Shown here: one piece after another, positions 17,467 to 19,939 of the stretch
Position numbering within the stretch: the first letter of the stretch is position 1
How the letters are laid out: the number at the start of each line of letters is the position of its first letter
Origin: Adineta vaga
Taxonomy: Eukaryota; Animalia; Rotifera
Length of the DNA stretch: 64,000 nucleotides
Direction of reading: 5' to 3'
NCBI GenBank assembly: GCA_021613535.1
Contig: CP075494.1
Coordinates: 8,122,001 to 8,186,000 of the forward strand
The notes under the pieces: model-generated
What the model was told of the DNA's origin: nothing
Database searches by the model: none
The model's input: the letters and a program-made list of their open reading frames with translations, nothing else
Made by a program: the position numbers and the translations under genes

Positions 17467-17793
17467 ATGAAATTCTTGTGTTATATACTCATTTTTCTAA
17501 TACCATTTTCTTTCTCGTATCCTCGTCAATATCCCAATGATCTAAATAATCTTCTTCAAATGTATTTGAAACAACGTGAAACCATGTTGGATACATCAAA
17601 ACAAAAATTTGGCTCTCCAAGACAAAATTTATTTCGAGTAATGCCAATACATTATCAACAACTACAAATACATAATCCAACATGTTTACCACAAGTATGG
17701 ACATGTGGACCCGGTTTACCACTCTGCTGTCCTGGCCTTATGTGTTATGATGGTAATGCTAAACGTGGTCGATATTGTGTAGCTAGAGGATAA
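17467..17793 (+). CDS. Secreted pre-pro-peptide with C-terminal inhibitor-cystine-knot (knottin) domain
   Basis: Signal peptide MKFLCYILIFLIPFSFS, spacer, then CLPQVWTCGPGLPLCCPGLMCYDGNAKRGRYCVARG* (C-C-CC-C-C, terminal Gly); intronless. Confidence 0.85.
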   Translation: MKFLCYILIFLIPFSFSYPRQYPNDLNNLLQMYLKQRETMLDTSKQKFGSPRQNLFRVMPIHYQQLQIHNPTCLPQVWTCGPGLPLCCPGLMCYDGNAKRGRYCVARG

Positions 17794-18048
17794 AATAATA
17801 CTGACAAATGTTGTTGTTTTTTTTCTTTTATAAATCTCATTTTTTCCAATAAAATTTTGAAATAAGTATTATTATACAGTTTTCTTATGTTGAATAATCT
17901 TGATAAAAATTCGAAAACAACCTATATGTGCATAATATCGCGTCTTTCACTATGACTCGTGAAATGTACAGGTAGTTGTGAAAAGAATATTATGTGTACA
18001 TGCTTGATTATATAAATTTATTTAAAAAAAAATTATAAATTTTACAAT

Positions 18049-18829
18049 TTATGCAATACGTGGTGTTTCACTAACAATTCCTTTTTCATCAACAGCAACA
18101 CGTACACGATCATTACGAAAATCCATTGTCATTGGTGAATTACGAGGAACTGTGAAGACCTGAGTAAAACCTATAAATTCATAACAAAACAAGATCAATC
18201 TATTGACTAGAGATACGTATTGACATACCAGTTTGTTCTTTGATATGTTCTACAACATATGAACCTTCTTTTCCAACCATTTCTGGCCATGCTGTTTTCT
18301 TCGCATCATTGAACAGCATTCGTGTATCAGCTTCTAATGGATCTGAAGATCATTAGTTTTATCGTTTGTTAACTTAGTATAAAATTTCTTCAAACCTGAA
18401 TTGATGCTAACAACTGGAATATCTTTTGTAATTGTACTATCACTACTGATAGGTACGCGAACATGTTGATCAGTGATAAACAAAAGATTAGTTCCTTTAC
18501 TAATTCGAACTGATAATGTATATATTCTTTGGGAAGAAAGGTCATTTGGTATTTCCATTTCGAACGCATATGGAAGTGAGAATAAATCGTCAACTTGAGT
18601 TTGTTTGATAATAATTGCTGCACATCAGCCATTGTTGTATCTTGAATAGAAATTGTCATTTTTGAACCAGATGGAATACGAATCGATTTATTAACATCAC
18701 CATCCACAAGAACTTGACCACGAATGATATTGCCAACTAATAAACAAATAAAATACAAAACGACAAAAGAAACAAAAACAACATACCACATAGTGGTAAT
18801 AAACATGTTAAAATAATTAAACGAAACAT
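18049..18829 (-). CDS. Secreted YbaY-like domain fused to potato inhibitor I (I13) serine-protease inhibitor; 4 exons (18829-18787, 18736-18396, 18342-18229, 18170-18049); 1-nt frameshift near 18622
   Basis: Signal MFRLIILTCLLPLCVG; IPSGSKMTISIQDTTMADV/AAIIIKQ...LPYAFEM...YTLSVRI...LLFITDQH (YbaY-like); KTAWPEMVGKEG...SPMTMDFRNDRVRVAVDEKGIVSETPRIA* (I13); three 50-58 nt GT-AG introns keep phase. Confidence 0.8.
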
Positions 18830-19939
18830 ATCTAAAACGTTTTCGTTTACAATCGTTAAATTTATTGATCTAAAAAAAACGGAATTATTTATTCGTTTAC
18901 AAACATATTATAAATACATAATAAATATAGGAAGAGCATGACAAATCGACAGAAAATATCCTTCGAACTGAAGCTGAAATGAAGAAAAAAACAACGTGTG
19001 CAGGTAGAAAGCAAAAGAGAGGGAGAGAGAGACAGTAGTCGCTTAGACATAACTATGCCTGAGTAGAATGATTTGTTGTCATTAGAAAAGAAAGTACGTG
19101 ATTGGTGAAACGATTGAAAAGAAACACAAATCGTTTTTTAATTAGATAAGAAATATAGTTTAAAAAAGTAGTCACAGTTAATTAATTGTTTTTATATGTC
19201 GACGTACGAGGTTAAAAAATACCTCTCATCAATCAATAATTTAGAACGTCCATGAAAAGAACAGCAGGATAGCTTGTGACATGTTTCCTTTAATCTAAAA
19301 ACATGGCAAAGAATTTCATCCAGCAAATTTAAAAATTAATCATGACATTATGAATCAATGGAGCAAGTCTCGTAAGAAAAATACTATTGTTGGCACTCCA
19401 AGAAAACAGTATTGAAATATGATAACATAGTTCTATTATAAATCGATCCTGATCTGAAATAATGTACTTGCTGTTAGTTCCAAACTGACTGTGATAGTTG
19501 GTTTTTCTGGATTAAAGTAAGTTAGATAATACCAGAATAAAATATCGTGTAGGTCAATTTAGACTTTTTTGTTTTTATTTACACCGACACAAAATAACCG
19601 GTAGTTGGAGAGAAAGAAAAAAACGACTGTTCCCTAATGAAACAAAATAATGAAGGGAGCATAAGTATACATATACAGACAACAAGAACGATAGTATGTG
19701 TCGGTCAATGGGCAGAGGAAAGAAAAGTGTAATACGAACAACAATGACGAATGACATATAAAAAACAATATGAGAAGAGAAAAATAAATAAAGACATCAA
19801 TGTTAATCAGTCTTGACGACAAACAGCAGCACGAACAACAACAACAACAACAACAACGATGAATTTAATATTGCACAGCAAGTAAAAGAACAAAAAAAAA
19901 GAATCAATGTGTAGGACAATAAAAAATAGGAATGATCAT

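Follow-up and report, generated by a model that had tools for sequence, protein, structure and literature searches.

A spliced bdelloid rotifer gene joins a YscW/YbaY-like domain to an I13-type inhibitor domain and belongs to a wider set of predicted secreted fusions

The window analysed here, a stretch of 64,000 nt from contig CP075494.1 of Adineta vaga, raises the question of whether one animal gene can combine a domain of a bacterial lipoprotein type with a potato-inhibitor-I (I13) protease inhibitor. The open reading frames at the locus are fragments, and the initial annotation proposed that three short canonical introns assemble them into a signal peptide, a YbaY-type domain and an I13 inhibitor with Met at P1. 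The gene that we reconstructed occupies 18829-18049 on the minus strand of the window and consists of four exons and three introns, with the following features.

18830..18857, minus strand: 5' UTR, minimum extent, reached by the RNA-like contig of run X13
18787..18829, minus strand: exon 1, start codon and signal peptide (MFRLIILTCLLPLC and the first base of a Val codon), from reading of the sequence
18737..18786, minus strand: intron 1, 50 nt, GT..AG, phase 1, skipped in X13 and kept in the DNA contigs
18396..18736, minus strand: exon 2, YscW/YbaY-like domain, a phase 1-1 cassette, from PF09619 matches in two frames
18621..18622, minus strand: site of a missing base in exon 2, an apparent frameshift, from the read contigs of all four runs
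18343..18395, minus strand: intron 2, 53 nt, GT..AG, phase 1, skipped in the X11 and X13 contigs
18229..18342, minus strand: exon 3, linker and N-terminal half of the I13 domain (KTAWPEMVGK... helix), PF00280 positions 1-21
18171..18228, minus strand: intron 3, 58 nt, GT..AG, phase 1, inside the I13 domain, skipped in X11 and X13
18049..18170, minus strand: exon 4, C-terminal half of the I13 domain with the reactive-site loop and TAA stop, PF00280 positions 28-63
18121..18126, minus strand: reactive site, P1 Met (18126-18124) and P1' Asp (18123-18121), from the HMMER alignment with LUTI
17997..18048, minus strand: 3' UTR, with AATAAA at 18022-18017 (read from the sequence) and a poly(A) site near 17997 (X11 contig)

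Counting the missing base, exon 2 is 342 nt long and the coding sequence 621 nt (206 codons and a stop). Intron 2 joins the YscW exon to the I13 exons. The signal peptide was called by eye, and the hydrophobic N-terminus is similar in the relatives P0060 and P0066. A convergent neighbour lies on the plus strand at 17467-17793, where a 108-aa open frame begins with a signal peptide and has a cysteine-rich, knottin-like C-terminal end; its stop is about 200 nt from the poly(A) site of the window gene.

Four runs from four studies were aligned over 17800-19100, two of them DNA-like (X1, X2) and two RNA-like (X11, X13). The RNA status of X11 and X13 was the tool's guess, for which the splice joints themselves argue; the contigs give no expression level. 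Introns 2 and 3 were skipped exactly in both X11 and X13, and intron 1 in X13, whose contig extends from 18857 to 18061, covers all four exons and includes the joint 18787/18736 between exons 1 and 2. The DNA contigs of X1 and X2 contained no splice joints. The X11 contig terminated at 17997 with a loose run of T, the poly(A) of a minus-strand mRNA, about 20 nt beyond the AATAAA. All three proposed introns were recovered in this way, and the joint over 18343-18395, which links exon 2 to exon 3, was present in the contigs of two runs. The YscW-like and I13 domains therefore share one mRNA.

The runs also differed at single positions. An Ala to Thr change at 18290/18292, just ahead of the Trp that starts the I13 domain, was found in X1, X2 and X11. 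Two substitutions in the core of the signal peptide, at 18795 and 18810, occurred on one allele in X2 and X13 and leave the core less hydrophobic, and a difference among runs at 18067 was silent.

Domain identities were assessed in searches with exon or piece sequences, with the truncated public protein of the locus (P0065) or with a full-length relative (P0060). Exon 2 matched the YscW profile PF09619 at positions 3-36 (13.7 bits) and 43-99 (26.9 bits; cut-off 22.6), and these pieces, lying in two different frames, were collinear with full-length bdelloid fusions. PF00280 (potato_inhibit) was matched at positions 1-21 by exon 3 (20.5 bits) and at positions 28-63 by exon 4 (42.8 bits; cut-off 24.5). 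The window gene passed the gathering score for both families, and YscW scores of up to 64 bits were reached by A. vaga paralogs. When a profile of the family was searched against PDB sequences, 5wec was matched at 1.1e-17 and CI-2 entries at about 1e-16; matches of the I13 part were CI-2, LUTI, HPI and eglin c.

The fold was modelled with AF2 on P0060 from A. steineri, the closest full-length relative, which is 49-70% identical per piece to the window gene; the alignment had 29 rows, with the window's pieces as separate rows. The model (mean pLDDT 86, pTM 0.56) comprised a β-sandwich at 18-124, a low-confidence linker and an α/β domain at 141-196, and at this pTM the packing of the two domains against each other is not predicted. 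Foldseek against the PDB aligned the N-domain with 5wec_A (E 2.6e-6, TMt 0.70) and the C-domain with CI-2, eglin c, HPI and LUTI (TMt 0.83-0.89, rmsd 1.4-1.7 Å), the values for CI-2 complexes being TMt 0.86-0.89 and rmsd about 1.5 Å. The relative thus has a YscW/YbaY-type β-sandwich and a CI-2-like α/β domain with an exposed reactive loop. The YbaY-type assignment of the N-domain held in the profile match, in the 5wec match and, through the A. steineri relative, in the structural comparison.

The HMMER alignment of P0065 placed TMDF opposite TKDF of LUTI, so that Met stands at P1; we take the P1 of LUTI to be the Lys of TKDF and that of CI-2 to be Met59. Over the canonical reactive site, with Thr at P2 and an acidic P1', and the Arg-x-x-Arg-x-Arg scaffold that follows, T-M/D-F-R-N-D-R-V-R-V of the window gene aligned with T-K/D-F-R-C-D-R-V of LUTI and with the paralogs, and both the W-P-E-M-V-G start and the S-P-M-T-M/D-F-R-N-D-R-V-R-V loop are kept among paralogs and orthologs. 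Together with the PF00280 matches in both exons, this bears out the reading of a complete I13 inhibitor with P1 Met. Pfam, the contigs and the HMMER alignment agree in placing it on a single spliced mRNA with the signal peptide and the YscW/YbaY-like domain.

The I13 domain of the window gene resembles barley CI-2, leech eglin c and flax LUTI in its length (60-64 residues), its α/β fold and its lack of disulfides, and shares with them the W-P-E-x-V-G start and a loop that reads T-M/D-F and then R-x-D-R-V-R in the window domain; barley CI-2 likewise has Met at P1. The known members are single-domain proteins, many of them without a signal peptide, whereas in the window gene a signal peptide and a 110-residue β-sandwich precede the I13 domain, which a phase-1 intron interrupts. 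The N-domain shares the PF09619 profile and the β-sandwich fold with the YscW/ExsB/YbaY lipoproteins and with 5wec, the 'alternative pilotin' of the Vibrio cholerae T2SS. In contrast to these lipoproteins, it is eukaryotic, lies on an exon flanked by introns, follows a eukaryotic signal peptide instead of a lipobox and is fused to a protease inhibitor, where the bacterial domains occur alone or with META. Of the features that mark the bacterial lipoproteins (lipobox Cys, Lol sorting), none was found in this eukaryotic gene, whose signal peptide is on its own exon without lipobox context. The domain is therefore a homolog of YscW/YbaY and not a functional YscW or YbaY lipoprotein. To our knowledge, no secretin partner is to be expected in animals, and pilotin function is not transferable to the domain from the family name.

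The occurrence of the architecture elsewhere was examined in a scan of the A. vaga genome (100.8 Mb, six contigs, about 30% GC), which returned 21 YscW matches and 33 I13 exon matches. At three further loci, C3:6.39 Mb, C3:6.40 Mb and C6:10.33 Mb, a YscW exon is followed on the same strand by two I13 exons, and in all three the YscW frame is unbroken. The C3:6.39 Mb copy (I4U23_012712), read base by base against the annotated protein, has four exons with all introns in phase 1, and the same exon blocks were found by tblastn in the copies at C3:6.40 Mb and C6:10.33 Mb (I4U23_030493). The three paralogs therefore have the four-exon plan and domain order of the window gene. The latter stands alone on C5 and represents a separate subtype: its YscW part is 31-32% identical to that of the main subtype, and its last exon is 56% identical to those of the paralogs. 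Its nearest full-length relatives are P0060 (A. steineri) and P0066 (R. sordida). Most members have Met or Leu at P1, and the C3:6.40 Mb subtype has Lys. At the DNA level, a search of the A. vaga genome with the locus returned only the self match because the paralogs are too diverged.

Word and profile searches found proteins with both PF09619 and PF00280 in A. vaga, A. ricciae, A. steineri, Rotaria socialis and R. sordida, and such proteins were also present in Rotaria sp. Silwood1, Silwood2 and Didymodactylos carnosus. All carry the public names "unnamed" or "hypothetical". With our own sub-profiles, both domains were detected in 40 of the retrieved proteins. The ESM Atlas contained one YscW+I13 cluster of 54 members, all eukaryotic and mostly from Rotifera, and the next nearest clusters were bacterial YscW families. 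Names were mostly lacking for multi-YscW and single-domain metagenome matches, and a word search with the N-terminal piece of the window gene (region 23-62 in an open frame of 138 aa) gave no candidate protein. In the searchable literature we found no account of potato-inhibitor proteins from rotifers or of YscW/YbaY in eukaryotes, and no mention of the locus tags. The suggestion that the architecture was new thus stood in part: we found no paper on it, but it is not unique to this locus, with four paralogous copies in this genome and database proteins across bdelloids. The YscW+I13 architecture does appear to be undescribed, though it is visible in databases bdelloid-wide.

The open frames downstream of every A. 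vaga YscW locus were inspected and scanned with Pfam. A Kunitz_BPTI domain follows the YscW exon at C6:10.43 Mb (L003) and C3:6.31 Mb (L005), with scores of about 69-70 bits, and antistasin plus Kunitz follows it at C6:5.31 Mb (L002). At C6:0.48 Mb (L016), YscW occurs with CBM14 chitin-binding and EGF domains, and at C3:11.63 Mb (L035:1630-4398) a 923-aa open frame contains several weak YscW-like repeats. About ten YscW-like loci stand alone, several of them without an obvious hydrophobic signal peptide; among these, L007/L009, L008/L010, L011/L013, L032 and L033/L034 form C1/C4 and C3/C6 duplicate pairs and one C3/C5 pair. The genome scan gave no YscW match on C2, so no ohnolog of the window gene was detected. 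In all, about 7 of some 19 YscW loci are joined to a serine-protease inhibitor, from three unrelated families. The phase-1/phase-1 YscW exon thus also stands ahead of Kunitz or of antistasin plus Kunitz in other bdelloid genes, a new finding of this survey.

Annotated proteins with PF09619 and PF00014 were found in A. vaga (I4U23_030526, I4U23_012684), A. ricciae, A. steineri and four Rotaria species, named publicly only as 'BPTI/Kunitz inhibitor domain-containing protein', and two transcript-like 1-kb contigs carried YscW, antistasin and Kunitz in a single open frame. The Kunitz and antistasin fusions begin with the same signal peptide and phase 1-1 YscW cassette as the window gene; their inhibitor modules are of the disulfide-rich I2/I15 families, in contrast to I13. 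The Kunitz fusions share the C3 and C6 neighbourhoods of the I13 fusions, the two kinds lying within about 85-100 kb of each other on each contig, and the C3/C6 copies pair as duplicates in a tree of the YscW domain. In the L002 locus, tblastn with P0149 and P0192 revealed a second antistasin-like and Kunitz-like unit at about 2319-2848 on the minus strand, probably a tandem neighbour located upstream of the YscW-antistasin-Kunitz gene, with its own N-terminus outside the locus.

What does the protein do? The gene model, expression from a single mRNA, both domain assignments and the bdelloid-wide architecture were observed directly, and we consider it likely that the gene is intact, transcribed, spliced and polyadenylated and encodes a secretory YscW-like/I13 protein in which the I13 domain is inhibitory and the YscW-like domain an accessory module. 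The predicted product of about 206 aa would comprise a cleavable signal peptide, the YscW/YbaY β-sandwich, a flexible linker of about 20 residues and a canonical, disulfide-free I13 domain of the CI-2/eglin c type with a Thr-Met/Asp-Phe reactive site. Secretion and protease inhibition are predicted from sequence: the I13 domain may act by the standard mechanism as a tight-binding extracellular inhibitor of subtilisin- or chymotrypsin-like serine proteases. The YscW-like domain may be an accessory module with no catalytic role, providing an anchor, a partner-binding surface or an exosite, a function suggested by its repeated pairing with inhibitors.

Two readings of the biological role, each possible but tentative, go further. 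In bdelloids, a β-sandwich of the bacterial pilotin/YbaY type may have been domesticated as a general adaptor that recognises a common target and so aims or concentrates I13, Kunitz and antistasin inhibitors there; the target could be the surface of a microbe, the cuticle or the egg or gut matrix of the rotifer, or an exosite on a protease. If true, the lineage would have its own extracellular system for defence or homeostasis, with some of its parts gained by horizontal transfer. We regard with similar reserve the idea that the protein is not an anti-pathogen weapon and that it regulates serine proteases of the rotifer itself, whether secreted or digestive, or guards extracellular matrix or eggs, the YscW-like domain tethering it to a host structure. 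A multi-copy family with a varying P1 is consistent with such a role, as is the fusion of the N-domain to Kunitz, to antistasin and once to CBM14 and EGF. The initial annotation's proposal of a secreted defence protein, perhaps against subtilisin-secreting fungal parasites, with the YbaY-like part as a targeting module, is speculative. A fungal-challenge study of bdelloids (Nowell et al. 2024, PMC11258130), with 200 of its supplements, did not mention such genes among those responding to infection, but the lack of text matches in a single paper is weak evidence.

It is improbable that the I13-like domain no longer inhibits proteases and has been reduced to a small, stable domain with a binding or structural role. 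The divergence of the window subtype from the main subtype in the YscW part could be taken to suggest such a change; however, the reactive loop and the W-P-E-M-V-G start are canonical and conserved in paralogs and orthologs, and the score of exon 4 is well over the cut-off. The preferred reading thus remains that of an inhibitory I13 domain with an accessory YscW-like module.

How the two domains came together was considered from intron phases. Phase-1 introns flank the YscW exon on both sides, which makes it a symmetric 1-1 cassette, as read in two I13 fusions (the window gene and C3:6.39 Mb) and in one Kunitz fusion. A stand-alone I13 gene at C6:2.335 Mb (L018:1360-1615), which encodes 70 aa without a signal peptide, has its intron at the same position and in the same phase 1 as the intra-domain intron of the fusions. 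About 700 nt downstream lies a second tandem stand-alone I13 gene with the same beginning; both start at a Met right before W-P-x-L-V-G, with no signal peptide. The cassette, the shared I13 intron and the same cassette ahead of Kunitz form the plan predicted by exon shuffling, the origin that had been proposed for the gene. Intronic recombination that brought a YscW cassette together with an I13 unit already present in rotifers would be expected to produce this arrangement. By the same process, bdelloids may have paired the YscW-like domain with at least three unrelated inhibitor families, I13, Kunitz and antistasin.

The shared I13 intron and the phase 1-1 cassette argue against import of the whole fusion from a bacterium. 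Such a gain en bloc, from a donor with a ready-made fusion of YscW to an I13/I78-type domain, would fit a YscW family that is overwhelmingly bacterial (among 14 control genomes only E. coli had a PF09619 match, and the nearest Atlas clusters are bacterial) and the weak PF11720 (I78) co-hits in the Pfam scan and among related proteins. We consider it very unlikely, however, since all named two-domain proteins come from bdelloids, bacterial profile matches pair YscW with META and not with inhibitors, the internal I13 intron is common to fusions and stand-alone rotifer I13 genes, and the cassette recombines with Kunitz exons. A bacterial origin of the YscW-like domain itself is plausible, given that both the control genomes and the nearest clusters show the family as bacterial. 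Deep nodes of the YscW-domain tree lack resolution, and the tree speaks neither for nor against a single origin of the I13 fusions or monophyly of the rotifer sequences relative to bacteria.

The reference sequence has a break in exon 2: the frame switches at 18621, and just ahead of this point the downstream frame has a TGA, so that a frame correction was needed, as the initial annotation had assumed. Every contig of X1, X2, X11 and X13 carries an extra base (T on the plus strand) behind 18621. With this base, exon 2 is a single frame reading ...M-A-D-V/A-A-A-I-I-I-K-Q..., in agreement with relatives such as P0107. An A>G difference at 18622 in X1, X2 and X11 represents a Val/Ala allele, and this heterozygous site adjoining the gap may explain the consensus error. 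The frameshift in the window is an assembly error and not a pseudogene lesion, and the missing base lies on C5 at about 8,140,621. The reading of the locus as a decaying copy of the intact C3 and C6 paralogs, to which the break, the shortened public protein and the missing C2 ohnolog in the genome-wide profile scan might point, is barely credible and was dropped on the read evidence, given that the frame-restoring base occurs in four of four runs, DNA and RNA, with 0 contigs lacking it, the transcript is spliced and polyadenylated, and intact full-length relatives of the window subtype exist in A. steineri and R. sordida.

The public product of the locus is P0065 (UJR21398.1, "hypothetical protein I4U23_024488", 132 aa, A. 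vaga). It was identified by an exhaustive profile search and local BLAST, with 100% identity over the last part of exon 2 and over exons 3 and 4, exon 3 corresponding to residues 56-92. It starts at an internal Met just past the frame break, and the assembly error at 18621 has deprived it of the signal peptide and of half the YscW-like domain. The public model was thus shortened by a single-base error in the chromosome-level A. vaga assembly.

Bdelloids are known for the uptake of foreign genes, and the fusions described here provide a clean example of intron-phase-compatible exon shuffling in such a lineage. In them a fold of bacterial lipoproteins and pilotins is found in a new context, that of an animal and, by prediction, outside the cell, where its repeated recruitment to three unrelated inhibitor families suggests that it is probably functional and not accidental. 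The comparison of loci points to the YscW exon as a reusable accessory module for secreted serine-protease inhibitors, and the family offers a way into the control of extracellular proteolysis in bdelloids and possibly into their defence against pathogens.
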